Source: Penicillus capitatus
Taxonomy: Eukaryota; Plantae; Chlorophyta
Assembly: GCA_965649825.1 (NCBI GenBank)
Contig: OZ287703.1
Location: 863,722-927,721 of the forward strand
Length of the DNA: 64,000 nucleotides
Reading direction: 5' to 3'
Part shown: in pieces, positions 1,992 through 64,000 of the stretch
Position numbering within the stretch: the first letter of the stretch is position 1
Layout of the letters: each line of letters opens with the position of its first letter
Position numbers and translations under genes: made by a program
The notes under the pieces: generated by a model
Database searches by the model: none
Told to the model about the DNA's origin: nothing
The model's input: only the letters and a program-made list of their open reading frames with translations

Positions 1992-2370
1992 CGTAACGAG
2001 CTTCTCTCCTCTAGGATTTTCACATTTGTCTCGTCAGCAACGACGTTAACTGATCGACGTCGAAAGGAACATACATCCCTTCAATACTTCCCACCAATAG
2101 CATCCGACCGAACACCAAGGCTCGACGCAGTTCCTACAACGTCAATGCGAAACGTCCTGCCTTGGAGACGATGGACGGCTGGTCTTTCTTGTCCCCTATT
2201 GTTATCAGTGGAATCGCGACAGCACTGAAGAAAACGCGTCAATGGAGACGAAGCGGACCATCATTGAGACTTCTAAACAAGCACTGGTCTCAAGCCATAG
2301 ACAGCAACATCGTGGAAGTGCGCCCCAGTCACGGCCGAAAAATCGACGCAAAGGACGTGGTGTCCTTGTT

Positions 2371-3989
2371 AATAAAATTGGCGCTTCTTACATCCCCTTT
2401 TCAAGTTAAACATCAGAGGAGAGGGCAACAACAGTGTTTAGGCTAAGCAGAGCGAGACCCGAATCAGAAACTTGCGTGTAATGACTTATAGATCAGGGAA
2501 TTCCTCGAGAGGCACTGGGGGGCCGTGTAAACGCGCGGATGGGTAACACCATGTAGTCTAGCGTGGCGAACGCAGACTTGGGGTCTTTCAGTTGCTCGAA
2601 TAGAGTCTTCGACACGAAGACCTTCAGGTTCCTGCTGGGTGTCCATTCCGGGAGGGACTGTCCGGCCGCGTCACGTTTGCGGCGGTTCATTCTGTGTGGA
2701 GCTGCCAGGTGCTTTTCTTCGAGTTCGGGCGCAGAGATCTGCCAGCGGGAGGCATTCTGCTCGGCGATTGCTGCTATTGCGTCTTCCGGGTCTATGTCCA
2801 GGTCGACATTGCTGATGACCACGGGGACTTTGTCTTTAGTCGGCGAGAGGTACGGATTGTTAACTGTGAACGTGCCGATATCCGGCAGTTCGAGGTCCCA
2901 GGCATCTCCTGCGCATTCTAGGCAGTGATCCAACGATTTCTCGAAGGACTCGCGTAGATCTGCACGGATTTGCACGTAGTAGCGGCCTCCGTGATCTGTT
3001 CTGATATCTTCGACGTAGTTCTTGAGATTCCTGATCTGGAGCTTTCGCTCCAGGCTGATTCCGAGCTGACGGAACGACGGGCGATCTCCCTTCAGCTTCA
3101 CTGGGCACAGCTGGAAGCTGCGCTCATCGCATCTGATCTGGGCTTTGAGCTCCTGGGTTTTCTTCCTGAGCTCTCTGGCCTGGGCGTTCCGTTGCTGTTG
3201 TGCTGGAGACTTTGTGGGCAGGGCCTTTCGGGCGGCCTCCCGGTACGATTTGGGAGCAGCGCTTCCGGATTCTGTTGCAGCTAGGTTTCTGTCTGCCGGA
3301 GCGGGGGGCGTGGTGTGGGCGGCGGGCGGTGACCAATCCGTGATGCTGTGATAAAACAGCATGCAGTTCTGGACATCTTGTAGTCTGGAGATGGCATGGA
3401 CAGCCTGCATCATTGCAATGCCTTTGAGGTCCATCTGCGAGACGATGTTCTCTATGATTCCGAGGGATGAGCGGATGTCATCTGAGCATGCCCGGAGGAG
3501 TTGGCTCGGCGGAGCGGAGTGACGTGAGCGGCAGAGAGCGGTCGTGTGTGAATCTCCTTCTCGTGGCAGGTCTGGGGCTTCTGGCGCCAGGAGCAGCTGG
3601 TTCCGCAGGTTCTCGAGTCTGTTCGCTAGAACTATCTGGGCTTCGTCTTTCTTTTCATGCGCCGACAGGTAGGCGCGGATCTTGTCGATGAGCGTGGCTG
3701 GTTCCACGGTCGCTGCGATGTGCGATGGGCAGGCTTGGAGGGCGGTGTTGACGAGTATGAGCTCCTTCTTGCTCATCTCTTCGAGCACCTCAGAGGACCG
3801 GCGTAGATCGCGTCGGTACCGGACCGTATGGGCCGCTTGCGCTACCGCCGTGCGCACTGGGTCGGGGGCGGAGCCAGGACCTTCGGGCTGCGAACCGGAA
3901 GGCTGCATAGTGCGTAGAACTCGCGTTCGGACACCGTCGTTCAGCAAGGAAATGTAGCGGGCAGAACGGAGGTGTCGTACGGAAAAGAT
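2371..3989 (-). mobile_element. ORF1-only (gag-like) non-autonomous non-LTR retroelement, full length, 14-bp TSD
   Basis: GTGGTGTCCTTGTT duplicated at 2357-2370 and 3990-4003; single ORF; no RT, LTR or TIR; TGTAA (minus strand, 2388-2392) 17 nt before the 3' end. Confidence 0.88.
2493..3908 (-). CDS. LINE ORF1/gag-like protein (471 aa from first ATG), lacking C-terminal zinc knuckles
   Basis: Helical N-terminus, SYREAARK motif, then VVISNVDLDIDPEDAIAAIAEQN..HRMNRRK..TPSRNLKVFV..LDYMVLPIRAFTRPP, resembling the pre-knuckle domain of I/Jockey/Tad-group ORF1; stop falls where CxxC would begin. Confidence 0.72.
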   Translation of the reverse strand: MQPSGSQPEGPGSAPDPVRTAVAQAAHTVRYRRDLRRSSEVLEEMSKKELILVNTALQACPSHIAATVEPATLIDKIRAYLSAHEKKDEAQIVLANRLENLRNQLLLAPEAPDLPREGDSHTTALCRSRHSAPPSQLLRACSDDIRSSLGIIENIVSQMDLKGIAMMQAVHAISRLQDVQNCMLFYHSITDWSPPAAHTTPPAPADRNLAATESGSAAPKSYREAARKALPTKSPAQQQRNAQARELRKKTQELKAQIRCDERSFQLCPVKLKGDRPSFRQLGISLERKLQIRNLKNYVEDIRTDHGGRYYVQIRADLRESFEKSLDHCLECAGDAWDLELPDIGTFTVNNPYLSPTKDKVPVVISNVDLDIDPEDAIAAIAEQNASRWQISAPELEEKHLAAPHRMNRRKRDAAGQSLPEWTPSRNLKVFVSKTLFEQLKDPKSAFATLDYMVLPIRAFTRPPSASRGIP

Positions 3990-5009
3990 GTGGTGTCCTT
4001 GTTGAAGTTTTCTTGTCTCACCACAGTTGATGTCTCGCCTTTCTTGATCTGTGGAAATGAAGATTTAGCTCAAGAGGCATCTCGCATGACATTCTTGTTC
4101 TCTTTGCTATGTGTCTACCTCGACAACCTCGAGCGCGTGGTGGACGTTCTCGTCTGCCTTCCTCTCCTCCGTTCTCTCGAATTGGATGAGGGCACCGTAT
4201 GCATTGCCTCAGCGTGGACCAATAATGGGGTGAAATTCTGGTCGAAGCTCACAGGAATCAAATCCATCTTCGTTTACGGTGGGGCCAATCCAAGAATCGA
4301 TGGCGCGTTCCCGATCGCAGAGGCAGAATTCTCTCAGTGGTCAAACAGAGGGTTCGAGCTGTGTAACCTTGAGACATTCCTTCACATGTTCAGAAACTCG
4401 CAGACTTTGGAAGCGGACGGGCGCCTTTTAGGAGAACCAGATCTCTACATTCGCCTTTTTCAAGCACCCGCAGCTATCGAACACAACGACGTTCAAGTCG
4501 GAGTATCCTTGCAGAGAAACTGCAAAGTCGATGCCTCATGTATCACTTCACTGTCTGCGAGAAAACCTACGAAGGCAGATCTCCTCTGGATAGCAAACCT
4601 CCCTCAGTTGAAACGGCTTATGATCGACGGCATATATGCGGAGACAACCCCGTACAACCTTATCCCTTGCAACTTTGGAACACTGGAAAGTCTGAAGATC
4701 GAAATTTACTTCGTCAGTGAGCCTGGACATCTGCCTGATGCGTTGTTCTGTTCTCTGCGTCGCCTCCGAGCACTTCGTCTGCGTGGTATCAAATTCGCCG
4801 GAAAGGCAATGGAGGGAAATCTGCCAGAGTTGCGCGTACTTTATGTTACCGACTGTTCCGTCACGGATGATCACTTCTCTTTCTTTTCGCGTTTGAAGAA
4901 CCTCGACAGTCTAAGCTGGACGTACAACCGTAGACACCACTCTTCTGGCGACTCTGAGTTCTTGGCAATGCTCACACAGGCGACAAATCTCAGATCGCTT
5001 ATTCTTGCA

Positions 5010-8000
5010 CCTGTGCTTCATCACAAGATATTCCACTACCTGGAAAGATTGAATAACTTGGAGGTGCTTGTCCTTGATATCAGGCAGATTTTAAACCTAG
5101 ATGGTCTTCACAAACTGAACGGCCTTGCGAACCTGGAAGCGCTGCGCATATCAACAAATCAGGAGCCAGCCGTGTTGGACGTGTTACATTCTCTTAAGCT
5201 GTCAACCAATCTGCAGATCTTGTACGTGAATACGAAGAAATGGAGCCGTCTTCACGATGGGGACAGTGAACTGGAAGTCAGAGTACTGGGAGCGAGTCTT
5301 AGGGATTATTCTATTTTCAGCTTTTACCGGCCTTTCGGATGAAACCGATCGTCATGAAGTCCTTTGCTGATCAGATCTGCTATCCTTTAAGCAATGGTCC
5401 AAACTTTCACAAAAACCAACGGGCACCGTGCCGTTGTTCATCAAGCATAACAGTCCTTGACAGTTTCTCGTTAAACGAATGCGAAACTGTTTCGTCCATC
5501 CACACGTGTTCATTGCCACCAACGCGCATCCATAGCTTCAGTCTCAAAGAGAACACGCTTAGGATGAAAAACAAGCGCTTCAGCGACGTATCTGTTCGCC
5601 TGCTACGCTCTTTTCTACAAGATCTCTCAGGGAAGGTCACTACTAAAACTGTCTTCCATTTCGGCGTGACTGCTCCTCTGATAAAGCAAATCCAAATCCA
5701 GACGACAATGTGGCTGCTTTCGTGCAGAATAGCGCACGCCAAATCAGGAAGGTGGCCTATTGGATCTCAGTCCGGCGATGAGACCTGTGTCCTTCGCAAC
5801 ACAGAAATCGATGTCCGCTCATATCGCTTCTGATTTGACGTTTCCGATTAGTCATTGACTCCGTCCAAAGGAGTCTACGTCGTTTTCGGGGATCTCGCAA
5901 TGAGCATGATCCTTGTGAGATTTTAGAAATTGAGGGCACAGTATGTCCTGACAAGAGCGCTCAACTAGTTTTGTAAGACGATAGATTCAACTGGAATCAT
6001 CCTGGATTTGAACGAGACTTTGAGATCGATAGCTTTCGGACATCTCAGGACATACAGTGTGCATTGTATCAGCAGACCGTATAAATACATCAGTAATGCG
6101 TTTTGGTCCATCCTGTGTCGATCGAATGCGACAAATAGAGTGGATGTCTATACCATCATAGACACTGTCGTCTGTCATAAGCACTTCGATCCAGCCTCGT
6201 ACAGTTCATCCTGCCAAGTGACCTTGTTGATTGGATTCCACAAACTTGAACCCGTCCCTAAAGAGTTAGAGTAAGAAAAAGAGACCAGCTGCTTGAAACA
6301 ACCACGTGTGTCACCTATGCAGTTCTCACTGATTCACTGCCACAGAACGGGACGATATCGATACTGCAACGCATTGTTCGGAATGGCTGATGTCTCCGAA
6401 ACTGTAGTTCTCTCCCTCATACAAATCGAGGGTGGAACGGGATGGCGAAGCTCTGTGGCCAACAATTCGTTCTGTTATCTACTTCATTAATAATTCCATC
6501 GGCTCTTATGTTTGACGTGACCTTGATACCACGCACAAACAGTTTCCTGGTGAATGGGGTTTAGTTATCGCAGTCACATCGTGCGCAGTTCCGCGTAGTT
6601 AACCAAAAAGTGGTCGAATGGCGTGTTAGTACGTTCGCCGCAGTATAAACGTCAACCAGACTTTACATTAAAACAGACGTTACCGACACCGTGGTGACAC
6701 TGGTGCTATCGAAGCGAAGAGTCCACAGCGCCACGTCTATCTGTTCGCGGTCACGTAACAGTCATTCGGCTGACTCTGATTGCGACAAACGGTTAACAGC
6801 CTTCGACGGTGTTTTTGTTTTCTATCTACTCGAGCCAGAAAGAATGTTCGTCTACATCAGAAGGCCGACGGTGAAACCTTTTCTTATGTCTTGCTCTCCC
6901 GAAGACACCGTTGGTGATATGAAAATGAAAGTGTGCAATACAGAGGGAATCTCACCCTGTCAGCAACTGTTTACGAATCAAAGCGGAAGGCCCATGGTCG
7001 ATGGCAAACTCAAGGACTACGGTATTGAAGACAGACACTCTATATTCCTGGAGCTTCTGCCGAGTGCTCGAGATGCAATGGAGATACGCGTCAAGATGAT
7101 CACTGGAAAAATCATTTCTATTTCTTGCTCTCCTGGAGACATCGTCGATGATATCAAAAACAAACTACGCGACGAAAATGGGATCCCGCCCCATCAGCAG
7201 CGTTTGATTTATGCCGGGAAACAGCTGGAAGACAGCAGAACTCTTAAAGACTACGACATTAAAGACGGGGCCATGTTGCAGCAGATTCTCAGGTTGATGG
7301 GCGGCGGTTGTATGTTCGCTGGAGTGGGATTTAACTTCGCCAGTATGAAAAGCGGCGGCAAGAAACAATTTTCCCAGAATGCGCCGGATTACAGAATCGT
7401 CGGAGAAGGATTCAATCTGGAGGGTCGATGCATAAATGAAAAGTGTGAAGCTTTCAAGCAATTGGCATGGAGTAAACTTGGATTCTCACGCTCTCTTAAC
7501 GAAGTCAATTCTCTCTTTGAGACAGCAGGCTTCAACATAGGCTTACTGCTGCACAACACGCCATGTCCCCTCTGCAATGAGTCAATGGACCCTGATTCCA
7601 TCGTGTCTTGCGGATTCTATCGATGCCGGTACACTTTTGAAGGCTATCAGCAAGGCGAGAAGACAGTCATCAAAGGAAGTAGCAAGGCGGAAGACTACGA
7701 TGGAATCGAGTATCACAGTGGAGTGATGAACAGCAAGACATGGACGACGTTGATCATTGTCGTCAAACCTCTTTAAAATGCCATTGCCTGACGCAACTTG
7801 AGATAAGCGTCATTGTATTTTTTGAAGAAACTGTCGTTTTGAGAAGTCTCGTACAAACCTAGAAGCAGCAGGTAACGTGGGACATATTACTTATATTCTC
7901 TTGATCTGTGAACTAATCTGCCGACCATATGCGTAAACCAGAATATTTGTTTCCATTGTTGCTGTGTCAAACGTGTGCGAGAAACAACGATCTGAGGATT

Positions 8001-8389
8001 TGTTTGTTCTCTCTTTGAACATGTGGTTTAAAACAATTTGCGTGTATGACAATCACAACCTCATCTCACTTACCTTGGCATTATTGTAAAAGGGCGTAGT
8101 AGCTGACAGGATGAAACAGGGTCTTTAAAAGAGATCATTCAGTGTGAGGATCGATAATGGATGGCTCTTGGAGCAGATGTGCTCTGATCAGACAGACTGT
8201 ATTCGTAGATAGACAGTTGGGCGAACGTGTTGGAGAACTGCCACCGCATCCATTCATAGGAATTACATTGCAGCACGACGACCGCTTGCCGTTGCTTCTG
8301 CCACACTCCGGTCGCGTTTGAGCGAAATGCCGATCTTCGATGCAACAGGCTCGTTTCGCGATCGGACGGGATTGGAGCATCGCTTCTCC
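5010..8389 (+). repeat. Tandem segmental duplication, copy 1 (LRR 3' end, intergenic DNA, ubiquitin-fusion gene, downstream DNA)
   Basis: Colinear similarity to 10186-14195 from CCTGTGCTTCATCACAAG to GCATCGCTTCTCC; promoter segment ~6530-6790 is diverged. Confidence 0.9.
6844..7776 (+). CDS. Ubiquitin-like x2 plus Cys-rich C-terminal domain fusion protein (no intron in this CDS)
   Basis: Two UBL units (second: [31 protein letters not shown]), then [31 protein letters not shown]. Confidence 0.85.
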
Positions 8390-10185: not shown

Positions 10186-10533
10186 CCTGTGCTTCATCAC
10201 AAGATATTCCACTACCTGGAAAGATTGAATAACTTGGAGGTGCTTGTCCTTGATATCAGGCTGATTTCAAACCTAGATGGTCTTCACAAACTGAACGGCC
10301 TCACGAACCTGGAAGCGCTGCGCATATCAACAAATCAGGAGCAAGCCGTGTTGGACGTGTTACATTCTCTCAAGTTGTCAACCAATCTGCAGATCTTGTA
10401 CGTGAATACAAAGAAATGGAGCCGTCTTCACGATGGGGACAGAGAACTGGAAGTCAGAGTACTGGGAGCGAGTCTTGGGGCTTATTCTCTTTTCAACTTT
10501 TACCGGCCTTTCGGACGAAACCCATCGTCATGA
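10186..10533 (+). pseudogene. 3' fragment of the F-box/LRR gene
   Basis: PVLHHKIFHYLERLNNLEVLVLDI..FYRPFG nearly identical to the C-terminus of 3972-5342; begins abruptly at the LINE 3' end with no 5' part. Confidence 0.85.
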
Positions 10534-12205
10534 AGTCCTTTGCTGACTGGATCTGCTATCCTTTAAGCAATGGTCCAAACTCTCACAGAAACCAACAGGC
10601 ACCGTGCTATTGTTAATCACGCATACCAGTCTTCGACAGTTACTCGTTAAACGAATGCGAAACTGTTCCGTCCATCCACACGTGTTCATTGCCACCAGCG
10701 CGCATCCATACCTTCAGTCTCAAAGAGAACACACTTAGGATGAAAAACAAGCGCTTCAGCGACGAGTCTGTTCGCCTGCTACGTTGTTCTCTTACAACAT
10801 CTCTTAGGAATGGTCGCTACTAAAACTGTCTTCCATTTCGGCGTGACTGCTCCTCGGATAAAGCAAATCCAAATCCATACGACAATGTGGCTGCTTTCGT
10901 GCAGAATAGCGCACGCCAAATCAGGAAGGCGGCCTATCGGATCTCAGTCCGTCGGTGAGACCTGTGTCCTTCGCAACACAGAAATCGATGTCTATTCATA
11001 CCACTTCTGATTTGACGTTTCGAAAAGACATCGACGTCTCCCAAAGAAGTCCACGTCGTTTTTGGGGATCTCGCAATGAGCATGATCCCTGCAAGAGATC
11101 AGAAGTCGAAGGCACAGCAAGTCCTGACAAGAGTACTCTAGCAGTCTCTAAAAGACGAAGGATTCAGCCGGAATCGTCCTGAATTTGAACGAGACTTTCA
11201 GATCGTGAGCTTTCGGACATCTCCGAACGTATAGTGTGTTTATACCAGCTGACCTTATGAATGCATCAGTAATGCGCTTTGATCCATTCTGTTCCCATAC
11301 AATGCAACAAACAAAGTGGATGTATGGGCAATCAGACACTGTTGCCTGGTATAGACACCTCGATCCAGCCTCGTACAGTTCATTCTGCCAAGCAAACCTC
11401 CTGATTGGTTTCAACAAACCTGTTGCCGCTCCCAGAAGGTCAGCGTCGAGGAAAAAAGCGACCAGTTGATTGAGACATCCAGAGGTACTACATATGCAGT
11501 TCTCGTTGATTCACGGACATAGAACGCGACGATGCCGATACTGCAACACGCTGTGCGGAACAACTGATGTTTCCGAGTCTATACTGTCCTCTCACTCCTA
11601 CCAATCAAGGAAGCAGGATGACGGAACTTGGCGTCCGACAATTTGTTTCGCCGCGTGCTTCATTCTCATTCCATCGACTTCTTGATTGACGTGACTTTGA
11701 TACCATGTCCTTTCGCGTTGAATGATGGTATAAGTGACGGACTGCCGAGGTGGCTTAGACGAGGTCGACGTTTTCGAAATAACTTCAGCACTGCGCGGAA
11801 CCGTCGCCTGAATTAAAGCGGAATTCTGCGTCATCGCTTCACCTTGCAACCGCTTGTCGCATTCGTAAAGTCTGTTGCCTCCTTGGCCACATCCTGAACA
11901 CTCGCGTTTGTCGCTGCTGTGCGTCGATTTCGAGGTATCATTGTAACACGTTTGCGCCGACGCGGGACTTCTACCCGTCATCTCCGTTCCGTACAGGGCC
12001 GGACCGAGCCGGCGCCCGTCGCGCTATCGACAACGCTTACAAAGTCTTAAACGCTCTGCTTACTGGTTTGTGTTGCAGGAGAAGCGGTAACAACAGCTCT
12101 CTTATTCGCTCGAGTTCACATAAGGGGGTGCGATAGGTCGCGTTTGAAGCAAACGGTTAGCGGCGTTTGAAGTGTTTTGTTTTCAGTCTTAGCGCCGCCA
12201 GAAAA

Positions 12206-13603
12206 ATGTTGGTCTACATCACAAGGCCTGTGGCAGAACCCTTTCTTATGTCTTGCTCTCCAGAAGACACCGTTAGTGATATGAAAACGAAGGTGCGCAA
12301 CACAGAGGGAATTCCACCCCGTTTGCAATGCTTTACGAATCAAAACGGAATGCCCATGGTCGATGGCAAACTCAAGGACTATGGCATTGAAGACAGACAC
12401 TCTATATATCTGGAGTTCCCGCCAGGCGCGCAAGAAACAATGAAGATATCCATCGAGACGTTCAGTGGAAAATCGTTCTCCATCCTTTGCTCTCCTGAAA
12501 ACACAGTTGATGATATCAGAATCAAAGTGGAACACAAATCGGGTATCCCACCTGCTCGGCAGCGCTTAACAAATCTAAACAGAACGCTTACGAACGATTG
12601 GAAACTAAAGGATTACGGTATTGAAGACGGACATGCACTATTCCTGGAGCTTCTGCCAAGCGAGCAAGAAACAATGAAGATATGCGTGAGGACAATGAAT
12701 AATAAGATCATGCCCATGTTTTGCTCTCCCGAAGACCGCGTTCATGATATCAAAATGAAAGTGTACAGCAGAGAGCGAATCCCACCCCGTCTGCAACGCT
12801 TGACGAATCAAAGCGGAACGCTTATGGTTGGTGGCAAACTCAAGGACTACGGTATTGAAGACAGACACTCTTTATTCCTGGAGCTTCTGCCAAACGTGCG
12901 AGGAATAATGGAGATATATATCAAGACGTTGACTGGTAAAACCTTTTCCATCTTTTGCTCTCCCGAAGACACCGTTGGTGACATCAAAGCCACAGTGGAA
13001 AACAAAGAGGGGATCCCACCCGATATGCAACGCCTTATTTTTGCTGGATACCAGCTAGAAGCTGATAGATATCTAAAGGACTACGAAATTAAACAAACGA
13101 GTGTTTTGCATCTGATCCTCAGGCTCCGTGGCGGCGGCTTCGCTCCCGGTATGGCTCTCAACTTCGCCAGTATGAAAGATGGTAACAAAAGAGGATTCTC
13201 AGAAAGGGCGCCAGAATACAGAATCATCGTACGCGGATTCAATCTGGAAGGACGATGCATGAATGAGAAATGCAGAGCTTTCAAGCGTTTGGCATGGAGT
13301 AGACTTGGACTCTCTAGCTGTCTGGAGGGAGTCGATTCTCTCTTTGAGGCGGCTGGATTCAACATAGGCTCATTGCTGCACAACACACCATGTCCCCTCT
13401 GCAAGGAGGCAATGGACCCTGATTCCATTGTGTCTTGCGGATTCTATCGATGCCAGTACACCTTCGAAGGCTATCAGGAGGGCGAGAAGACAGTCATCAA
13501 AGGAAGTGGTAAACATGACGACCTCGATGGATTCGAATATCACAGCGGAGTGATGAACAGCAAAAGTTGGATGACATTGGTCATCCATGTCAAAGCTCTT
13601 TGA
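12206..13603 (+). CDS. Ubiquitin-like x4 plus Cys-rich C-terminal domain fusion protein (no intron in this CDS)
   Basis: Three 78-aa UBL units ending [11 protein letters not shown], a fourth ending LRLRGG, then the same Cys-rich domain as 6844-7776. Confidence 0.87.
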
Positions 13604-14199
13604 GATACCACCACCTGATGTCACTTGAGATTAGCGTCTTCTCTTTAAGCGACTGTCGTTCGAAGGAGTCCCCACAGAGACCAGCCTTCTACATTTCCTC
13701 GGTCAATGAACCAATCTGCAGACCGTGTACATGAACCAAAACTTTTATTTCCATCCATTATTGCAATGTCAGTCGGTTTGAGCAGCAACGATCTGAGGAT
13801 TTGCTTGTTCCCTCTTAACAGTTGATTTAAACAATTTGCATGTGTGACAATCATAGCCTCATCTCAGATACCGCGGCATTCTTGTAAAAGGTGTAATAAC
13901 TGTAGTAACTGACAGGATGGAACAGGGTCTTTAAAAGAGATCATACAGCGTAAGGATCGATAATGGATGGCTCTTGGAGCAGATGTGCTCTTCGATCGGC
14001 CTGTACGCGTAGATAGACGGTTGGGCGAACGTATTGGATAACTGCCACCGCATGCATTCGTCGTAGGAATTGCACTGCAGTACGACGACCACTTGCTGTT
14101 GCTTCCGCCACTCCGGTCGCGTTTGAGCGAAATGCCGATCTTCAATGCGACAGCCCTCGTTTCGCGATCGGACGGGATTGGAGCGTCGCTTCTCCTACG

Positions 14200-24700: not shown

Positions 24701-26590
24701 ATACTCGATTTTCCCGTGATGTCCTCCATGTCATTGAGAAGAGCTGCCAGTAGCGAACTCTTGCCGCTGCCGACCCTGCCCGCGATGCCGATCAGCTCTC
24801 CTGGATGTATGCATAACGATATATCCCACAGAACCTGTCGCAGTTGAGGCTTTGCTTTCACCGTCTGACGTAAACGTCCATCAACAAAGAATCTCGCGAT
24901 GCTGTGGAGGATACTTTTGATCGTCTTCGGCCTGGCGCCCGTTTCTGTGTGCCAGGCTTAGGGTCTGCGTTCTGCATGTACCATCCATAGTTACCCTGAC
25001 AGACCTCCACTCTCCCGCAAGGAATCTCTCTGTCAGCCGTATCACTGCTTTCCTGTCTCTTCTCTGGCGTCTTGAAGAAAGCATCCAGCCTCTTAGCAGT
25101 GACATAAGCTTCGCTGACGTGTTCAACGGCGACAGCAAAGAGATATGCCAATGTCAACCGCGGCAGCATCATCGTCGTCAATGCAAGAAAAACATCAGGA
25201 ACATTGAACTCCCCTTCTGTAAACCGATACTGCCGAAAACACAGCAGAGATATAAAGACAGCCGGTACCCATGGGATGCGTACGGTAATGAAGGTGACGC
25301 AGACAACGAGGGCTCGCGTCACACCAGGTAGGGATATGTTGAGTGCCTTGATGCAGCCTTTCAGCAGCAGAAGTCTGTGCTCTCTTCGACGAATGGCGCA
25401 CACATCAGCGATCAGCGGTTCTTCCCAGCAAAGCATCTTCACAGAAAGATTTCCCGAAATGATCTCCTCGGTGAGATGGATTCTCCTGTCGGTTACCACA
25501 GCTGTCTTTTCTCTACATCTTCTCAGGTATTTCGACAGGATAGACTGCAAAGTGCTGTGAGCGTAGCGAATACATAAATATCGAGGGCGACCTGGATTGG
25601 AATAACGATCAGGATGCAACTCATCCCAGCTACGGCGGGAACGATTCCTAAGATGTGCGTAACGACGATGAGTGTGAAGATTCCCTCTAATGGTCCGACG
25701 AAAAGAAAAAACCACATGGTGCCGAGCTGCTCAAATCGCTTGACATCGTTACTGGCGAGATTCACGATTTGACCTGCACAGTCATCTGTGAGCGCACTGG
25801 ACTTAACGCGACGAGCACCTGTCGTCGTCTTTGCAATGGCAGAGTAATTCAGTCTGAGCAGCTTCGCATGAATCGCAGCCGTGAGCATCACACGCAAACG
25901 ATATCCGATATAGAACCCGATCCTACAGATGAGACACTCTTGGTTTCGGTTTGAGGACGCATCTCTACGGACCAGGCCATTCGATGATGCGTCAGCATGA
26001 AGACGACGGGACTGAGTGTCAGAAGACATCCAAAAAAGATGCCGTTACCCAGATCGCTGTCACCATTCTTGTAATCTTCCAGCCACACGAGCATCGCTCT
26101 GAGAGCAAAGGGAGCGTACAACCTTGACGAGGTCATGACCGTGTGAGGATACCGACAGGCAGAATGTTTGCGCTCACCGGGTAGCGGTCTCGATTGCAAG
26201 GAAGAGAAACACTTGGAGCGAGAGCTTCCACTCTTGCATCACGATAGCCAGCATCACATCATTGGCGCTGGAATTTTTGCGGTTCTGCAGGACAACCATG
26301 GACTCAAGAGTCAATGTGGCGACGGATGGACCAACCCGGACGGCGCTGTAGTTGGTTTCGAATTTTTTCAGCAGATCGGCCGTTGAGACATCTGGGTGAA
26401 ACTCTTTGGCCGAGAACTGGTCGAGCTCGCCCCTGGCTCCTTTATCGATAAGGGGCTCCACGAAAGAAAAGGAGAAAAAAGAACATGTGGCGCACAGACT
26501 GCGCCACAAAGAACCAAAGAAGGAACATAACTGCGGTCTTTTCTTTTTACGAGGTACGGACGTTTCCCTACAACCAACAGAGGCATTCAT
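21760..26590 (-). CDS. ABC transporter subfamily C (MRP4-like, no TMD0), copy 1, multi-exon
   Basis: Two TMD-NBD halves; NBD1 [39 protein letters not shown]; NBD2 [35 protein letters not shown]; [17 protein letters not shown]. Confidence 0.95.
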
Positions 26591-49592: not shown

Positions 49593-52500
49593 ATGAGCTC
49601 TCTCGTGCTGTGGCTTCTATGCGTCACATGGGGGATCTCGCCTGTCGATTTGTCTTCTCTTCCTCATCAGACAGACGGCGTCCGGATATCAGGTACCTGC
49701 CAAAGATAATCTAACCGATTGCAAGATTTTGTCGCCGAATCGCCTTTATTAGCTAACTGGTTACATAACGCCCGTTGCATACATTTCTCCCAGCTACCTA
49801 GACATTCTACAGTCCATGTCTGCATTTTTCTATCTTAGGTCGCAATTCCTCCCAAATAGAACGTGGCGAGATTCGCGTGTCGACGATCGAAGAACTGGAA
49901 GACGCACTTCAGACATTGCAGGAAAAACAAACCATCTCGTTAGCCGGAAGACAATTTCACTTGACCAAGAGTCTGTCGATAGACAAAGATGACGTGCGTC
50001 TTGTCGGCGTATCGCCCGAAACGACAGTTTTCGTTTGTCCACCAGAGAGCAACGCCTTCAACATCAAGTACCGTAGCTTCCAATGACGTACGTGTCAGCC
50101 GGTGACGGCTTCCATATAGTGCACGAAATGTCACTGTATCAGCACTGAGAATTGAAAATTGTCGACGGCAGGCGGCCGTCATTGTGATCAGCCATGATAG
50201 AGGGTCCGAAACAGAGACCGTCATTTTTGATCGAGTGTCCTTTCGCCGAAATCAGAACGACATCGATCCTTACCCAACGCTTGGAGGAGCGATCTACGCT
50301 ATGCCGTTGGCTCCTGTCGATTCCACATCTACCGGGACGGATCGAACCGTGAGGATCAGAGACTGTACGTTCGAAGACAATGCATCGGATTACGGAGGAG
50401 CGAATTACTGCGATGGCTGTGTTCTCGACATCATCCACTCCAGCTTCTCTGGTAATTACGCCACGACGAGCGGCGGGGCGATCTACATTGCCGAGAAAGA
50501 ATCGGCGCTGTCTGTTCAGGACTCCTCCTTTCAAAACAACGATGTCCTCGAACACAGTTACGGCAGAGAGGTTTTGCGAGAGGACGCTTCTCCGATCGAA
50601 CAAGATCCTTACTTCGCATTTTCGTCCACCATCAATGGCGGCGGTGCCATCTCGGCTGAATCTGTAGAAAACGTTACTGTATTGAACACGTCATTCTTCT
50701 CGAATCGTGCGCCGAGTGGCGGCGCTATCTCTCTCAGGCTGGATGCGGTGGATCTATACGGACGACACAACAAGATTTCTGTCGGCATTGAGAAATGCAT
50801 TTTCGAAGAGAATCAAGCCACAAGCGTCGAGGAAAGTGACTTCGATGATCCAGAGGATAACTTAGGAGGCGCCGTCTACTTCATCTCGAGCAGCACAAAT
50901 GTGGAGCAGTTTTATCTCGCGGAGTCTTTCTTCAAAAATAACTGTGGCCAGTATGGAGGCGGACTTCACGTCGTCGCAATGAAGTCAACGTATGTGACCA
51001 TCTCGGGATGTACTTTTGAACAGAATCGGGCAGTGAAAGCGGGAGGAGCTGCTCTTTTTCGAAACAACGGTCGAATCCGTCTCACGGACACGAAATGGAA
51101 GAGCAATGCAAGCGGCCTCGGCGGAGCCATTATGCTGACGAATGCTGCGAGACTGGACGCATATCCCCAGACCACTGCGATGAACCATATTCCCGAAAGA
51201 CGAAATATTTTTGTGGGAATATAGCACAGAATGGTGGTGGAATGGCCTGTGTTGGATGCCATGGCCTTTTGCTTAGGAATGTCGAATTTGTCCAGAATAA
51301 AGCAACGAAATCGGGAGGTGGTCTCTACGTACTGGACTCTGCTCAGGATTCGAACATCGAGCAGTCATCTTTCCAGAATAATGTCGCCACTTATGGAGGA
51401 GGTGTGGCGCTTCGGGCAACGGCAAACGTTCAATTCTCGGCGGCTCGACAAGGCTGGATGAATGTGTTTGCGAACAATACGGCGGTGTCAGGTGGAGGAT
51501 TGTTCGTGGAAGGAAACAGGCATAAAGAAAACACACTACAAGTATCTCTCTTCCCCTTACAGACATTGCACGGGCATCAATTGTGGTGATTTCAGTTGAA
51601 GAGCTGTCGTTTCGAAGGAAATCATGCCGTGGGTAGCAACGATCTCTTTACCCAAGCTGAGCTTGAGGACATGGTACTTCACAATATCCTAGAAGAGATC
51701 TCGTCCATGGCATTCCTTTAGAGTATGGAATTGCCAGACAACGGATCTGTGGTGGCCAGACGTCCGTCGAACGGTTGCGGCATCGGTGCTGGTGGGGGAG
51801 CATGCCTGATCTTCGATGATGTTCCTGAAGACGCCATGGCTGACGTTCAGATCTTCAACGCAGACTTCGTGGGCAACGATGCCTTGATCGGAGGTAAGGA
51901 AGGAAGATATGGTGGGATTTCTGTTCCTTCTGTCTGATACAGGTGGCATGTTCACAAGTGTCGCAGGGGAGTGGAACAGTGATGCAAGGATTGCCTGTCT
52001 GTCGAACGTACTTACCGCAAAACCCTGCAGAATTTACTACATGATGCAGACGACATTTGAACAGAATACAGCTGTTCTCGGGGCAGGAGGATTATTTGTC
52101 TCTGCGCCCGAAAAGATCATCGTCGGCTGCGGTGTGTCTCATACCGAACTGGAGAGAGCGATAACATCACGGGATGCTCGAAGTAAGGGGAGTCACGTGG
52201 AAGAGTGCTTTAAGTTTCGTAACAACACCGTGTTGGTACGTTCTCTCGTTTAGGAGATCCAGAGCAACAGATGTTGTGTACTCGTAGCATCACGGCGGAG
52301 AATACGGGCCAGACATTGGAAGCAGTGCCTACAGTCTCCTCGTAACGGATCCGGTGTCCGGAGAAATCTCGGAACACACTGGAGGCGACAGACTTCTCCC
52401 TTCTGGTTCGATTTCTTCCAACTACAGCGAAACTCAACGGACGGACGGAATTAAACTAGCGATCAAGGATGCCTTCAACCAGACAATAACCGAAGGGATT

Positions 52501-56959: not shown

Positions 56960-59900
56960 ATGAGCACGAAGCATATGGTGTCATTGTGGACGAATCTTCG
57001 CCAATGTCTGTGGTCGTTGTACTGCAACGTAACATTTGCATCAGTCAGCAAGCTCATGGACGAAGGAGAGAAGCAGCAACTCGACTGCCGATCTGCCCGT
57101 GAATATCTCGCGCCGGAGGTGCATTCACGAAATCTCCTCCAGGAATTCGACGCCATTTACAACCCTCTGAAGGTTTCAGTCTCGCATTTTGACCTCTCGG
57201 AGTTGACATCAGCGATCGATTTCGATTCTAGGCGCGGCGGCAAACGGAAACATCGAATGACGTCTTGTGGGCTGTTCTACGCCAAGAACGTCCGAGAATC
57301 GTCCAGCTGTGGCTGTGGCTGAGCGTTGAGACCGTTATCCGGTAACGTCGGTTTCTCTAGGATCCGCACATCTAGTACCTGTGTTCTAGGTTGGGCACAC
57401 CCCTTGTGCTCAGAGAATTTCTCGTTTGGCTCGAGGACTACAAGGAGACAGATGTGGCGCTATCGGAAGGATGTCTATGGGGTGGACTTTTAGCTGCATC
57501 GCCTATTGCTTACATGCTTGTCCATCATCAGATGTTCTGGTAAGGTGCACAACCCAGGAATGGTCTGGCCTGAAGGGGAAGATGTGCATAGGGTCGGCGT
57601 CCTCTCTGGCTTCCGGATGAAAACGACATTGGCAGCTGCCCTGCATGCAAAACTCCTGAAACTGAACTCCTCCTCCGTTGCACGTATCACGACGGGTATG
57701 TCATGGCAACGAAACGTGGTGCTCTTCAGCTGCAATGTGAGATAGGTCATGTCGTCAATCTTATGAGCAATGACTTGAAGCGATGCGAGTTTGCCATTGC
57801 GTTTTCTCCCTATCTGTTTTTCGGTCCATTTGAAACAGTCTGTGTCCTGGTCATCGTTACTCTGTTCTTGGGGTTTGCACCGGCCATGGCTGGGATCAGT
57901 TGTTTCCTCCTCCTCGTTCCAATTCAGGTAACGGGCCCAGTTTCTGTTCAGTATTGAATGCGTACCTTGAATGTGTCGCAGTCCATGCTCTCGAAGTACA
58001 TTCGGACGTGCCGCCTGAAAACTGCAGCGGCAACGGATCAGAGAATCAGTCAGATAGGGGAGCTGATCTCAGGAAATCTGGCCGTCAAGATGTTGGGATG
58101 GGAAGACCCACTGATGCAGAATGTGCAAAAGATGCGGCACAAGGAGCAAAAGTTGTTTCTGATCAAGAGTTACATAAAGTCGTTTCATGCTACTGCTCCG
58201 GGAGTTACGCGTGCACTCGTCGTGGGTGCAACATTCATTACAGTAATGGATATCTCATTGAGTGGTTAGAGATTCACGTCTCTGTTTTGCTTTCAGTATC
58301 GATACACAAATGGAGAGCTTAATGCTCCAGATGTGTTTCTAGCTCTCAGTTTGCTGATGTTGCCGCGGCTTACGCTGGCGAATTTTTTTATCTTTGCAGT
58401 TGAATTGGGAAATGAAGGTTACGTCACTGCTCGAAGACTGGATGCATTCTTAAAGATTCCAGAGACAGAGACAACTAATGGAAAGAATACGTGTAGCGTT
58501 CCTGGTGACGTGAAGCTCGATCAAGGGAACTTTGGATGGTACGGACAGAAAGAGGAGACCAAAACAAAGTCTCGCAAAAATGTTATGATGCGAGCCCTCT
58601 CTAGAGCAAGCACTCAGTTCTCTTTCTTTCTGAATGTGACAGTAGATCATCTCTGTAGACAAAGAGTGGAAAAGTCAAGAAGAAAGCGGTGCCTGAGTTG
58701 AGACAAGCCTTGGCGGATGTGAATCTCTCAGTTAACCAGGGAGAGCTCGTCGGTGTTGCGGGAATGGTGGGCAGCGGAAAGAGCTCCCTACTTGCAGCGC
58801 TGCTGAATGACATGGAGAACCTCTCGGAAACACAAAGTAGGATACGCTTAACACGACTGCCACCGCAACAGTGTCTTAAGGTGCTCGGCTTCACGGCAGA
58901 GTGTCCTACTGTTCGCAGACGCCGTGGATCATGGCTGGGACTGTCCGGGAGAACATCACCTTCGGTCTGCCCTTCGACGAAGGCCTCTATCGACAAGTGG
59001 TCAACAGTTGTGCTCTGGAAGTCGACTTCGAGCAGTTCCCTGAGGGAGATGCCACTGAGCTCGGAGAAAGGGGCATCAACATCTCGGGTGCGAACCACCC
59101 ACTCCTCCAAACATTCCAGCAATCCAGTCTCTCTTGGTTTAGGTGGACAGAAAGCAAGAGTCGCATTGGCGAGGGCGGCTTACAGCCAGGCAGACATCCA
59201 CCTGCTCGACGATCCCCTCAGTGCTGTCGACCCACGAGTGGCCAGAATTCTATTCGACAGGTGACAGATCTCCTGTCGCATTCGATCTCCTGCACTCTTC
59301 ATCTCGTGCAACAGGTGCATCGGACCGGCTGGCCTCATGAAGAACTCGACAAGACTGCTTGTCACCCATCAGAGGCAGTTCCTTCCTCTCTGCGATTGCA
59401 TTGTTCTCATGAACGAAGGCAGAATCGAAATAGTGGGCACCTGGAAAGAAATCGAGAACGATCCCATATTGAAAGTGGTCGAACAGAACAAAGAGCACGA
59501 AGAGGTGATTCATCGATATCATAGTCTGCGCGCTTTCCAAAACGGATGCATTACAGGTAAGCTTAGATGCGGTTGGGGAAGCTGCGAACAGAGCAAAGAA
59601 GTGTTCGACGAATGAAGAAGGCAGTCACATCAAGTCTGACGCCGCGAACAAGGGCAATTCGAGCTCAACTCCTGGTAACTTCATGCTTTGTGCCTTCCTT
59701 TTTCTTGATCTGGTTTTTTAGAAGGTAAAGGACTTGTGAAAACGGAATCAAAAGAGATAGGCAGAGTGTCTTCTGGCGTATACTGGGATTACATCTGTCA
59801 CGTTGGCGTTCTGCCAATGACATTCGGTATCTTCATTCTGGCTGTTGCCGTCTGCTGCTACCTCTTGACTGAGTGGTGGGTTGCGCACTGGGCATCAACT

Positions 59901-61819
59901 GATGTGGATAACCAAGATGCCGATCACTGGATCTGGGTTCTCGTCGCATTCGCAGGAGCTGGCATCTGTGCACATATAACAAGCGTCCTTGCTCTTTTTA
60001 CCATGTTGCTATTGGGTTCGACACGACTACACCGACAAATGTTGAAGACTGTTATGCACTCCCCCCTGAAGTTCTTCCACACAAATCCAACCGGCAGAAT
60101 TCTCAACAGATTCTCCAAGGATATGGGCATGCAGGACGAAGATCTGCCGTGGATAATAGCTGAAGTTTCGACAGTAAGCACAGTCACAGATGCTCATCAT
60201 GTGAAAAATCACCGTTGCAGAATATCTTTGTGGTTCTGGGTACAGTCTGTTTGGTATGTGCTGCATTACCTTACATGCTTATTTTTCTCGTTGGAATTGT
60301 TTTTCTCTTCTGGCACTTTCAACAGCGCTATGTTGTGACGTCGCGAGAGATCAAGAGATTTGATGGGATTACACGATCGCCTGTCTATGCCACACTCTCC
60401 GAGGATATCAAAGGATTGGCAACAATAAGAGCATTCGAATGCCAAGACGAGTTTCAGGATCGTTTCATGAACTGTCTGGATCTGAACGGGTCATGGTGGA
60501 TGGTGTTCATGTTGACTTCTCGCTGGATCGGCTTCCGAATGGATGGCATTAGTGCTTTCGTCATGCTGTTTGTTGTCTCCTTGGCTATAATTCTTGCTAA
60601 ATCAGTAAGACCGATTTCTGGGTATATCTGAGTCATTCGAGTTTCTGCAGGTGTCTGCAGAGGTATTGGGTCTAGCATTGACATATGTCATCTCGTTGAG
60701 TGGAATGCTGCAATGGACTATGCGACAATTAGCAGAACTGGAGAATACCATGACATCTGTTGAAAGAAACATGGAGTACACACGACTCGAACAGGAACCT
60801 CCAAGGTAGACAGCCTTCGCTGTCTCAAGAGACGTTCATGTTTCGGTGACTAGAGCATCGGAGGGAGGCGGACAGGCGCCAGAGGAGTGGCCCACAGTGG
60901 GAAGCATCGAGTACCTCTCCATGACGGCGTCCTACAGACCTGGACTGGATCCCGTTCTGAAGAACCTCTCCTTCGTCATCCCTGGAGGCAGCTCGGTCGG
61001 CATCGTCGGCAGAACGGGCTCAGGAAAGTCCTCCCTGCTGCTGACTCTCTTCAGGTCTCCTGCTTGGACACCGCTTCGTTCTCTGCATTGAGAAGACTTC
61101 TGTGTGCAGGCTGATCGACGTGAACGAGGGAGAGATCAGGATCGACGGCGTGGACACGTCCAGCATCGGCATCGACGTCCTGAGGAAGCAGCTGGCGGTG
61201 ATCCCGCAGGACCCGGTGCTCTTCGGAGGTGAGGATCTCGGACATGTCTCTGCCGGCCACTGACTCAATGCGACGCAGGGACGCTGAGGTCGAACCTGGA
61301 TCCGTGGAGCGAGCACAGCGACGCCAGGGTATGGGACGTGCTGCAGAAGGTCTGCCTCGATGCAGCGGTCAGGGACATCGGCGGACTGGAGGCACTCATC
61401 TCGGAGAACGGAGGCAACCTGAGTGTCGGACAGCGCCAGCTTCTCTGTCTGGCCAGGTGGCCTCTCTTCGTCTGTTCGCCTTCTGTCCTCTCGCATCGCT
61501 GTTCGTCGACAGGGTTCTCCTCTCGGATGCCAAGATCGTGGCGCTGGACGAGGCCACAGCGAATGTGGACAGAGGCACCGACTCCTTGATACAGAACTCT
61601 CTGCACTCTCTCATCACAAACAACGACAAGACGCTCCTCATCATCGCCCACAGGATAGACACCGTCATGGACTGCGACCTGCTGCTCGTCTTGGAGAACG
61701 GAGAGCTGGTCGAGTTTGACGCCCCAAGCAGTTTGATGACAAAGGAAGGCGGAGTCTTCGCCGGAATGGTAGAAGCTGCTAAGAAAGCAACGAAGGTTAG
61801 ATCTGTGGAAAGCAACTGA
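56960..61819 (+). CDS. ABC transporter subfamily C (MRP4-like, no TMD0), copy 2, multi-exon
   Basis: [92 protein letters not shown]; colinear with 21760-26590. Confidence 0.95.
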
Positions 61820-63310
61820 AAGGTGTTATTCTATCTTTGGTACGGCAAACAACACACATTCTTGTTTTTCAAACAGTATTTTTCAATCTTTTCTGTGATA
61901 TTCACAGTTGAACAAAACTGCCTGTTTGGAATGTTTCATGACGTATGCTCGCAGTTTGACTGTCGGTTGTTGTTTTCTCGACCTTACTGAAAAACGGAAC
62001 CGAGTCGAACGAGGGTCGTTAAGCGTCGTAGCATAACGGTCCCTGATTCGTTAATTGCTGTAATGGACAGTAATAGAAGAGTATGTGTACAGACGATAGT
62101 CTTTGGATGTTTCAGCGCCTTCGTCTCTGCGTCGTTTTCGTCTGCATCCAAAACAATTTCGCTGTTGCAATTCCAACAGCAATGCGCTCTGTTTCAGAAG
62201 CTATAAATGGATTTTCTCAACGTCTCTTCTATCGAGGTGTAGACGAACCTTACACGCCATCGTCGCAGTTAGTTACGTTGCCTGTTCGAGGACCTAATCA
62301 ACAACTATCGAAATAGGCATCTAAATGCTCGTTAAGCTTACTTCGAAAGTAGTCGACGCCTTGTCTTTCGCCTAAACTGCATTTATCACAACAATTCGTG
62401 AAAGCATAAGATCGTATGAGTGAAAGCACTATATGCTCCACCGTACACTACTCTACAGAAGTGTATCTCCATAAAACTAACTCTATGTGGCCTCTGAAGT
62501 CGACTCGATGGAAGCACTACTAGCTGATGTCAATGACTATTGCGAGTACTCATTTCTCTGGATGCATTCGATCTCGATTGCAGTCCTTAGCTGTTGTCTT
62601 TAGAAGGTTCGATGAAAACTGGCCCCCTACGCGCCTGCTGTTTCGTGGCCACGAATAGAACTCTGCAAAACTGCGTCACTCTCAGGATTCTATGAATAAG
62701 ATGATCCATCATGCCATCTTCATCTATTCTGTCCTTTCTGTTGACAAATGTACAAACTCATGCAAAATCACTTCCATAAAAGCCACAAAATAAACCACCG
62801 AATGTCATTATATTTTTATCCTCCATCTACCCACACTTGCGATGTTGCGAATGATCTGTCATGGCGTACCGTAAGGTATTGCACGGTACTAATCTCTTCT
62901 CTTAGAATGCATTGTGATGATATAAACATAGTCTTGGAAGGCATGCACAAGTCTTGAAGTTATCGTCTTTATGTGCCGACTTCGTTTCACACGATTGGCT
63001 CCATGCGAATGACCTTGGCGTGGGTGTCGAGTTAAAAAGTACTGGGAGCATTTTTACGGAGAAGTCGTTTGTGTCAAACCGTCTCTCTTGTGAGTCAATA
63101 CATAGTCTGGACAAAAAAACTCTCGCCAACCCGACAAGTCCTTCCGGGCACGTTTTGTCAATTGCGTTTCTCATAGGTTAAGGTTCTTTAAGAGTGTTGA
63201 ACCTTACTAAAAGAATTCGTCGGATCTGGGCGAAGATACCGCCGCAACGGGATCAACGATTTTTTGAGGCTTCATACCAACGGACGTATCTGACAATGTG
63301 GTCCACGAAG

Positions 63311-64000
63311 ATATATATAAGATTGCGTGCTTTTACAACTCCTTTTTGAGAAGATCAGGAGTGCGTCGAAACATTAAGTGTAGCAAACAATATTCAGGCG
63401 TCCAAACAGAATAGACCGGCCGACATGAATGAAATGGTGGTTCAGGTAGTTTCTCGTGGTGCACTGGGGAACCGAGCGAACGGTCGGATGGGCAGTACCA
63501 TGTAGTCCAGGGTAGCAAACGCGGCCTTGTGGTCTCCAAACAGTTGTTCGTGGAGAGTCTTCGAAACGAAGACTTTCAGGTTCTTACTCGGTGTCCATTC
63601 CGGGAGGGGTTGTCCTGTAGCGTCTCGTTTTCTGCGATTCAATCGATGCGGGGCTGCAAAATGCGATTCTTCGATTTCTGTTACCGGCAACTTCCAGCGG
63701 GATGCGTTCTGTTCAGCGATGGCGGAGATGGCCGCTTCAGGGTCGATGTCCAGGTCGACATTGCTGATGACCACTGGGACCTTGTCTTTGGTGGGCGAGA
63801 GATACGGGTTGTTGACCGTGAACGTTCCAATGTCATCCAATTCCAGATCCCATGAGTCGCCTGCACATTCCAGACATCGGTCGAGCGATCTCTCGAAAGA
63901 CTTGAGCAGTTCGGCTCGGATTTGCACATAGTAACGTCCGCCGTGATCAGATCGGATGTCTTCTACATATTCCTTCAGGTTCTCGATCTTTAGCGTGCGC
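63311..64000 (-). mobile_element. Second, diverged copy of the ORF1-only retroelement (3' part; runs off the window end)
   Basis: Open frame from the window edge to the stop at 63442, about 80% aa identical to 2493-3908 by hand count over 161 aa; stop at the homologous codon; ~125-nt 3' UTR with TGTAA (63333-63337) and a similar terminus. Confidence 0.85.

Follow-up and report, generated by a model that had tools for sequence, protein, structure and literature searches.

The window analysed here, the whole 64-kb stretch of DNA, holds two copies, W1 and W2, of a family of elements whose only ORF corresponds to the ORF1 of a LINE. We consider it very probable that this is an old, diversified family of ORF1-only, non-LTR elements, maintained by selection and non-autonomous, and that its copies are probably mobilised in trans.

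Two ORF1-only elements in the window

The features of the two copies, and of the gene into which W1 is inserted, are as follows (coordinates are those of the window):

2162..5342, + strand: host F-box/LRR-like gene, split by W1
2357..2370: TSD at the 3′ side of W1, GTGGTGTCCTTGTT on the + strand; perfect, 14 bp
2371..3989, − strand: W1, a complete ORF1-only element of 1619 nt; ends defined by comparison with L001 and L003 and by the TSD
2393..2420, − strand: 3′ stem-loop of W1, B-type (UCCUCU, 16-nt loop, AGGGGA)
2493..3908, − strand: ORF of W1, 471 codons, with the ATG at 3906-3908 and the stop at 2493-2495; ends in ...PSASRGIP*
3972..3986, − strand: 5′-terminal motif of W1, TTTTCCGTACGACAC, common to all full copies, including the TARA copy (~30% aa identity)
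3990..4003: TSD at the 5′ side of W1, GTGGTGTCCTTGTT; perfect, 14 bp
63302..64000, − strand: W2, the visible 3′ part of a second ORF1-only element, recognised by homology to W1; runs on past the end of the window
63302..63441, − strand: 3′ UTR of W2, with a (TA)n tail at 63302-63310
63338..63362, − strand: 3′ stem-loop of W2 (ACUCCU, loop GAUCUUCUCAAAA, AGGAGU), followed by UGUAAAAGC at 63329-63337
63442..64000, − strand: ORF of W2, last 185 codons and stop (63442-63444); part of RRM-like domain 1 and the whole of domain 2

Excision of W1 in silico, in which the flanks were joined and one copy of the TSD was dropped, yielded an uninterrupted F-box/LRR-like ORF of 525 aa on the + strand. The restored ORF, together with the perfect 14-bp TSD, suggests that the insertion of W1 was recent and disrupted the gene. 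Past the TSD at the 3′ side of the element, the host bases at 2346-2356 (GTCCTTTGCGT, in the orientation of the element) match the first 11 nt of the element (3979-3989; ATCTTTTCCGT) at eight of the 11 positions; this match at the 5′ junction could be microhomology, or chance. When compared to the copy at positions 7920-9544 of L001, W1 appears as a mosaic, with 95-100% identity over positions 3295-2495 of the window, 56-93% in the 5′ 700 nt and a hypervariable block at about 3590-3395, which suggests recombination or template switching between subfamilies.

The 185 codons of the W2 ORF that are visible in the window have no internal stop, and the C-terminus reads ...PSAPRETT*; the domains were assigned by carrying over an AF2 model of the C-terminal half of W1, in which tandem RRMs are predicted (see below). 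The 3′ terminus of W2 is close to position 63302, although the (TA)n tail blurs its exact position, and position 63311, from which an earlier note on this DNA had counted the copy, falls within the terminal tail. The 3′ module of W2 is that of L002, a full-length copy, at 34 of 34 nt.

Purifying selection on the family ORF

Inside the 64-kb window, W1 is the sole relative of the W2 ORF. Identity between the two copies is 75.7% in nucleotides (559 nt) and 80.8% in amino acids (182 aa), and their stop codons share one column of the alignment. These values agree with the earlier note, which had described a divergence of about 20% in amino acids, many synonymous changes, an absence of stops, and a stop at the same codon (PSASRGIP in one copy and PSAPRETT in the other). 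Its statement that the trailers are of similar length also held, as W1 has a trailer of 123 nt and W2 one of about 131-139 nt; both close with the conserved 3′ module, and the end motifs quoted in the note were found to lie within the stem-loop and TGTAA(A/G)AAGC of this module.

Over 184 codons, analysed by the method of Nei and Gojobori, W1 and W2 differ by 84.5 synonymous (Sd) and 48.5 nonsynonymous (Nd) changes, a synonymous excess with a binomial p of 8e-23. With a dN of 0.125, dN/dS is 0.084, a value that is approximate because dS, at 1.48, is near saturation. Across all pairs of the family, dN/dS is 0.07-0.25 in the RRM half of the protein and 0.24-0.53 in the N-terminal half. Thus, the ORF of the ORF1-only family is under purifying selection, as had been proposed from the comparison of the two copies alone; for W1 and W2, as for the RRM half in other pairs, dN/dS is nowhere near 1.

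Architecture and mobility across copies

The full-length set comprised seven copies, W1 and six others (L001, L002, L003, L004, L008 and L013), drawn from three public assemblies and, in the case of L008, from a TARA Oceans scaffold. The full element is 1.62-1.79 kb long, starts a few bases 5′ of an invariant CCGTACGACAC, and has one ORF, of about 470 aa, between a 5′ UTR of about 80 nt and a 3′ UTR of about 125-135 nt. At the 3′ end, the stem-loop is followed by UGUAA(A/G)AAGC, then by 8-15 nt, and finally by a variable tail, which is (TTA)n in W1, L001 and L003, A8-9 in L004 and L013, AAAAA in L002, (TA)4 in W2 and (CT)n in L008. Exact TSDs of 12-15 bp were found at all seven full copies; the sequence of the repeat differs at each site, and the sites are unrelated. 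LTRs and TIRs were looked for in the element and none was found. The TSDs, the variable tails, the restored empty site of W1 and the lack of LTRs or TIRs are marks of target-primed reverse transcription.

Neither ORF2 nor RT is present between the stop of the ORF and the 3′ end in any of eight copies (the seven full copies and W2); since only 123-139 nt separate the stop from the 3′ end, the element is without ORF2 and hence non-autonomous. A lack of TSDs or of a defined 5′ end, and ORF2 sequence downstream in other copies, were among the findings that the earlier note had set against its own reading. When the other copies were checked, TSDs and a defined 5′ end were present, and there was no ORF2 downstream.

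The same design is found in the element on the TARA Oceans scaffold (L008, encoding P0024), which is 1.63 kb long, has a single ORF with about 30% aa identity, carries the CCGTACGACAC motif at its 5′ end and is flanked by a 15-bp TSD. An element of this design at such a level of identity indicates that the ORF1-only architecture is ancient. Two of the other copies lie close to, or within, other transposons: that in L003 (region 3160-9315) is inserted in antisense orientation within the polyprotein (pol) gene of a Ty3/gypsy element, between the protease and the RT/integrase, and that in L013 (region 6811-11160) is found about 500 bp from a 5′-truncated LINE. Neighbouring genes include PsbQ, PPR and RPE65; taken with the TARA source, these neighbours make the hosts look like marine photosynthetic protists. 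A protein-pattern scan of JGI metagenome contigs gave no relatives. A scan with a 20-nt core of the 3′ end gave three matches, which we rejected as chance; no ORF1 or ORF2 similarity accompanied them.

A LINE ORF1 homologue that stops before the zinc knuckles

A profile search covering 1.84 billion representative proteins gave 84 matches. About 20 of these have two CCHC knuckles right after the shared domain, with the pattern C-x2-C-x4-5-H-x4-C followed by C-x2-C-x3-H-x4-C. The shared domain closes with the last conserved aromatic residue of RRM2; the knuckles start seven residues past this aromatic, and the ORFs of the window, like those of their whole clade, end twelve residues past it. Among the relatives, the knuckle-bearing P0031 (in L006) lies upstream of a 1174-aa ORF2 with Exo_endo_phos_2 (endonuclease) and RVT_1 domains, and P0052 (in L007) reads in frame into an endonuclease domain; P0033, P0055 and P0061 also have the RRM + CCHC layout. 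A motif of the type C-x2-C...H...C was not found in W1, W2 or P0001-P0024. The family protein is, then, a homologue of the 'RRM + CCHC' ORF1 of LINEs that stops where the knuckle module begins. The origin from a LINE ORF1 that the earlier note had put forward is borne out by the knuckle-bearing relatives, and in particular by P0031, which heads a LINE with ORF1 and endonuclease/RT.

According to the same note, both copies keep a sequence encoding Pro-Gln-Cys (PQC) in the −1 frame, at the place where the first knuckle would start. The sequence, CCCCAGTGC, is indeed present in W1 and W2, and its positions correspond (151 and 159 nt from the end, with W2 cut at 63311), but its reading as the vestige of a knuckle did not stand. 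A two-knuckle HMM run on eight trailers, in all three frames, scored about 0 bits, and in frame 0 CCCCAGTGC makes up the codons of a conserved P-S-A, of which the PQC is a by-product.

In a Pfam search with the ORFs of the window and 33 members of the family, no family was assigned to the RRM region, and Transposase_22 had no match at E <= 1. A sequence-profile search of the PDB returned nothing for the close family and only CCHC knuckles for the wide family. A first AF2 model, of the full-length protein from 24 sequences, had a pLDDT of 67 and marginal Foldseek matches, among which human L1 ORF1p was only at rank 39 (E 0.22); a C-terminal model was used instead. This second model covers the last 240 aa of W1, was built from 33 sequences and reached a pLDDT of 92 and a pTM of 0.78; in it, a long helix precedes two beta-alpha-beta-beta-alpha-beta domains. 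With it, Foldseek gave at least 50 matches in the PDB at E <= 1e-3, and all of the 50 matches listed are to two tandem RRMs, including those of HuR (2.8e-5), nucleolin and UP1. The predicted product of the ORF has an N-terminal half made up of helices, then a long helix, then two RRM-like domains in tandem.

Phylogeny and the order of losses

A tree was built by neighbour joining from 186 columns of the RRM region. In it, W1, W2 and all of their close homologues form a clade with 100% bootstrap support, nested among knuckle-bearing ORF1s, and every complete member of the family stops at the same place. W2 groups with P0008, P0011 and P0012, whose elements have a 3′ stem of the A-type, and W1 with P0001, which has a stem of the B-type. 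W1 and W2 therefore belong to separate subfamilies, which are old and co-resident, and do not stem from a recent duplication.

The earlier note had proposed that the knuckles and ORF2 were lost once, in an ancestor of both copies. Inheritance of the ORF1-only state is sustained by the single clade, by the single place of the stop and by the seven TSD-flanked copies that lack ORF2. The joint loss is not, as the ORF1 of the LINE that shares its 3′ tail with the family (see below) is also without knuckles (...RPPTASAQ* at its end, as compared to ...RPPSASRGIP*). In the tree, the ORF1s of the tail-sharing LINEs form a separate knuckle-less clade, but the deep nodes are weak, with 11-39% support. 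That these LINEs too are knuckle-less suggests that the knuckles may have gone first, in an autonomous ancestor and before ORF2; the knuckles may thus have been lost once, in such an ancestor, or twice.

Candidate helper LINEs share a 3′ module with the family

Candidate helpers were found in two related metagenome assemblies: in L007, from ERZ25074695, where the closest copies of the family also reside, and in L013 and L014, both from ERZ26696514. Over its last 61-66 nt, the LINE in L007 matches the 3′ ends of W2 and L002 at 88-89% identity (z = 7.7-13.7 against shuffled sequences); for W2, cut at 63311, the identity over the last 61 nt is 88.5%. The ORF1 of this LINE has 28% aa identity to that of the family, and the ORF1s of the tail-sharing LINEs as a whole 25-29%; these are knuckle-less and end in a similar way, in ...RHFEDSPGRPPTASAQ as compared to ...RAFTRPPSASRGIP in the ORF1-only element. 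The upstream half of the 3′ UTR is dissimilar between LINE and element (z about 0), and the 5′ ends are not significantly similar (z −0.9 to 4). A shared terminal module next to an unrelated upstream 3′ UTR is the pattern of tail-sharing between LINEs and their non-autonomous dependants.

In the LINEs of L013 and L014 the loop GAUCUUCCCAAAA and UGUAAAAGC are as in the elements, and the stem is different but compensated. Elements and LINEs together have three types of stem (ACUCCU/AGGAGU, UCCUCU/AGGGGA and UCUCUC/GAGAGA); as read directly from the sequences, each type pairs at all six positions, and both bases differ in four of the six pairs. The level of identity in the module, 88-89% while that of ORF1 is about 28%, together with the compensatory changes in the stem, points to selection on RNA structure at the end where priming would occur. 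The stem-loop of the W1 type has its structure, and not its sequence, in common with the LINEs found (z about 1), and no LINE with a stem of the W1 type was present among those recovered.

The LINE in L014 is full-length: it is flanked by an 11-bp TSD, its tail is A-rich, and no internal stop interrupts its 1234-aa ORF2 (P0110); the lengths of the TSDs and the tails of the ORF1-only elements match those of this LINE. P0111, of 1302 aa, also has both ORF2 domains. Stop-free ORF2s surfaced only when a concatenated conceptual ORF2 was used as the query; a C-terminal piece of the LINE returned only fragments. The region of L014 in question (2500-9830) contains two LINE copies arranged head-to-head; in the full-length copy, ORF1 is interrupted by an in-frame stop. 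The copy in L007 is degenerate, and neither a TSD nor a 5′ boundary was found for it. L012 was considered as a second insertion of this LINE and rejected, since it represents the same locus as L007, with 94% identity over 15 kb and the same LINE insertion; the two are haplotypes or sister strains of one metagenome assembly, so the LINE copy predates their split. No helper LINE was found in the 64 kb of the window, where the only RT sequence is an unrelated, degenerate fragment at about 8.3-9.5 kb.

Proposed mobilisation of the family and alternative explanations

We propose that transcription of the element would start at the conserved 5′ end and that the ORF1 protein would coat its own RNA. 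The endonuclease/RT of a resident LINE would then recognise the shared 3′ stem-loop and, by target priming, reverse-transcribe the RNA at a nick in the DNA of the insertion site, which would leave duplications of 12-15 bp and variable tails. Lineages with a working ORF1 alone would keep propagating, and the ORF would in this way come under strong purifying selection. Mobilisation in trans by a tail-sharing LINE is probable, whereas transcription of the element and binding in cis by the ORF1 protein are inferred as parts of this scheme.

Copies of LINEs are often rearranged or truncated, and degenerate as well as 5′-truncated LINE copies were seen in the related assemblies, which would fit a view of the copies described here as independent, dead-on-arrival deletion derivatives of full LINEs, alike by chance and not part of a self-propagating lineage. 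However, the 5′ end, the position of the stop and the 3′ module are constant across copies with a dS of 0.2 to more than 1.5, even in the TARA relative of about 30% identity; dN/dS is much lower than 1, the copies form one monophyletic group, and there is no recent parent, the nearest LINE ORF1 being only 25-29% identical. We therefore regard this explanation as extremely improbable. Strong purifying selection on an ORF that has no enzymatic function in transposition would also be seen in a host gene family domesticated from a LINE ORF1, maintained for a function in the host and copied by duplication or retrocopying, and co-option of LINE ORF1 is documented, as for L1TD1 and the EKA effectors of Blumeria (PMC4161310; PMC4641428). 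Yet no two full copies share a site, each is flanked by a TSD of its own, and the tails vary; one insertion lies in a gypsy pol gene and another disrupts a host gene, and the conserved non-coding termini match the 3′ module of a LINE. These properties are those of an active mobile element, and domestication is very unlikely to account for the family, although an additional benefit to the host is possible.

It might also be that another RT mobilises the element, from a different clade of LINEs or from an LTR element, and that the 3′ module is shared through common descent and not through recognition. The sequence of the W1-type stem differs from that of every LINE found, and other retroelements do exist, such as the gypsy element in L003 and the unrelated RT fragment in the window. 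Common descent sits poorly, however, with a 3′ module that has kept 88-89% nt identity while ORF1 has drifted to about 28%, and with the compensatory changes in the stem; the lengths of the TSDs and the tails, in turn, fit the LINE in L014. On balance, we find this explanation unlikely.

Within the preferred explanation, that of an ORF1-only family mobilised by a tail-sharing LINE, a further suggestion can be made, albeit tentatively and with some doubt: the family could represent a 'gag-only' lineage that is ancient, evolves on its own in marine photosynthetic protists and is no recent by-product of its LINE. Such a lineage would persist across species (from three ENA assemblies to the TARA scaffold), its ORF1 would have no recent kinship to that of the helper, and it would keep, or repeatedly re-acquire by recombination, only the 65-nt 3′ module of the helper. 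If so, this lineage would be a stable hyperparasite, with an RNA-binding protein of its own that competes with that of the LINE for ORF2p.

Relation to known ORF1-only elements

HAL1 is a mammalian non-autonomous LINE derivative that encodes only ORF1p and needs the ORF2p of its parent LINE (PMC5753468, citing Smit, 1999 and Bao and Jurka, 2010). The family described here resembles HAL1 in that an RNA-binding ORF1 is kept and RT would be borrowed. However, HAL1 is an L1-clade element that has poly(A) tails and an ORF1 of the coiled-coil/RRM/CTD kind (Transposase_22), whereas the family of the window has no Transposase_22, two RRM-like domains and a 3′ stem-loop module. In addition, CCHC knuckles occur in its relatives, identity between its ORF1 and those of the tail-sharing LINEs is only 25-29%, and the family is deep (about 30% aa identity across assemblies) and no short-lived offshoot.

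The telomeric HeT-A of Drosophila is a long-lived element with Gag/ORF1 only and no pol, and its RT is thought to come from TART or TAHRE (PMC5537684). It belongs to the Jockey clade and is found at chromosome ends, in head-to-tail arrays and without TSDs, whereas the family of the window is interstitial, in genes or transposons, with TSDs of 12-15 bp. The Gag of HeT-A retains zinc knuckles, unlike the protein of the family described here. Thus, the family belongs with the ORF1-only, non-autonomous derivatives of LINEs, but is neither HAL1 nor HeT-A.

In the classification of Khazina and Weichenrieder, a Type I LINE ORF1 has at least one RRM immediately upstream of CCHC knuckles (see PMC4120745). 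The wider family (P0031, P0033, P0055, P0061 and others) has exactly this RRM + CCHC arrangement, and the position upstream of ORF2 is that of the homologues P0031 (L006) and P0052 (L007) and of the ORF1 in L014. The family of the window has the RRM, in the predicted structure, but no knuckle and no downstream ORF2 for endonuclease/RT. LINE/SINE pairs that share a 3′ tail, with 'stringent' recognition, are also known, an example being UnaL2 and UnaSINE1 of the eel. As in such pairs, the terminal 60-70 nt, with a conserved stem-loop, are common to LINE and non-autonomous element, and the remainder is unrelated or far diverged. SINEs, however, are short elements that encode no protein and usually go back to pol III transcripts, whereas the element described here is 1.6 kb long and has a selected ORF of about 470 aa (on tail sharing by LINEs and SINEs, see also PMC5786205).

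The known ORF1-only parasites of LINEs, HAL1 and HeT-A, are special cases, and the family of the window sits outside animals. Its boundaries are clean, its ORF is under strong selection, it has a 3′ stem-loop in common with candidate helpers, and it has diversified deeply; with this combination it would serve as a useful natural experiment on what ORF1 does in cis that cannot be borrowed, and on how recognition of the 3′ end by RT constrains both parasite and helper. For annotation, ORFs of about 470 aa without a Pfam match resemble orphan genes and should be masked as transposon genes; moreover, insertions of the family disrupt host genes, as W1 does.

Other features of the window

An Rfam scan of the window gave no match. 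The window contains a tandem segmental duplication, formed by positions 5010-7838 and 10186-13660, with 77-85% nt identity. The duplicated block holds the C-terminus of the LRR gene together with a gene (6691-7776 and 12167-13603) that encodes repeated ubiquitin-like domains and is Cys-rich towards its C-terminus. The degenerate RT fragment mentioned above, which derives from a different LINE, lies between the duplicates, at about 8318-9524 on the + strand; it has 28-30% aa identity to P0110 and to the ORF2 in L006, and no nucleotide similarity to the candidate helper LINEs. Two further features of the window, both in keeping with the genome of a eukaryotic protist, are an ORF that combines Chlamydia-PMP-type repeats with a beta-helix and a set of split ABC-transporter ORFs, with coordinates 50184-51224 (+), 24858-25715 (−) and 59736-61819 (+) for these ORFs; judging from the sequence, the split ABC-transporter ORFs appear to be exons with short introns between them.
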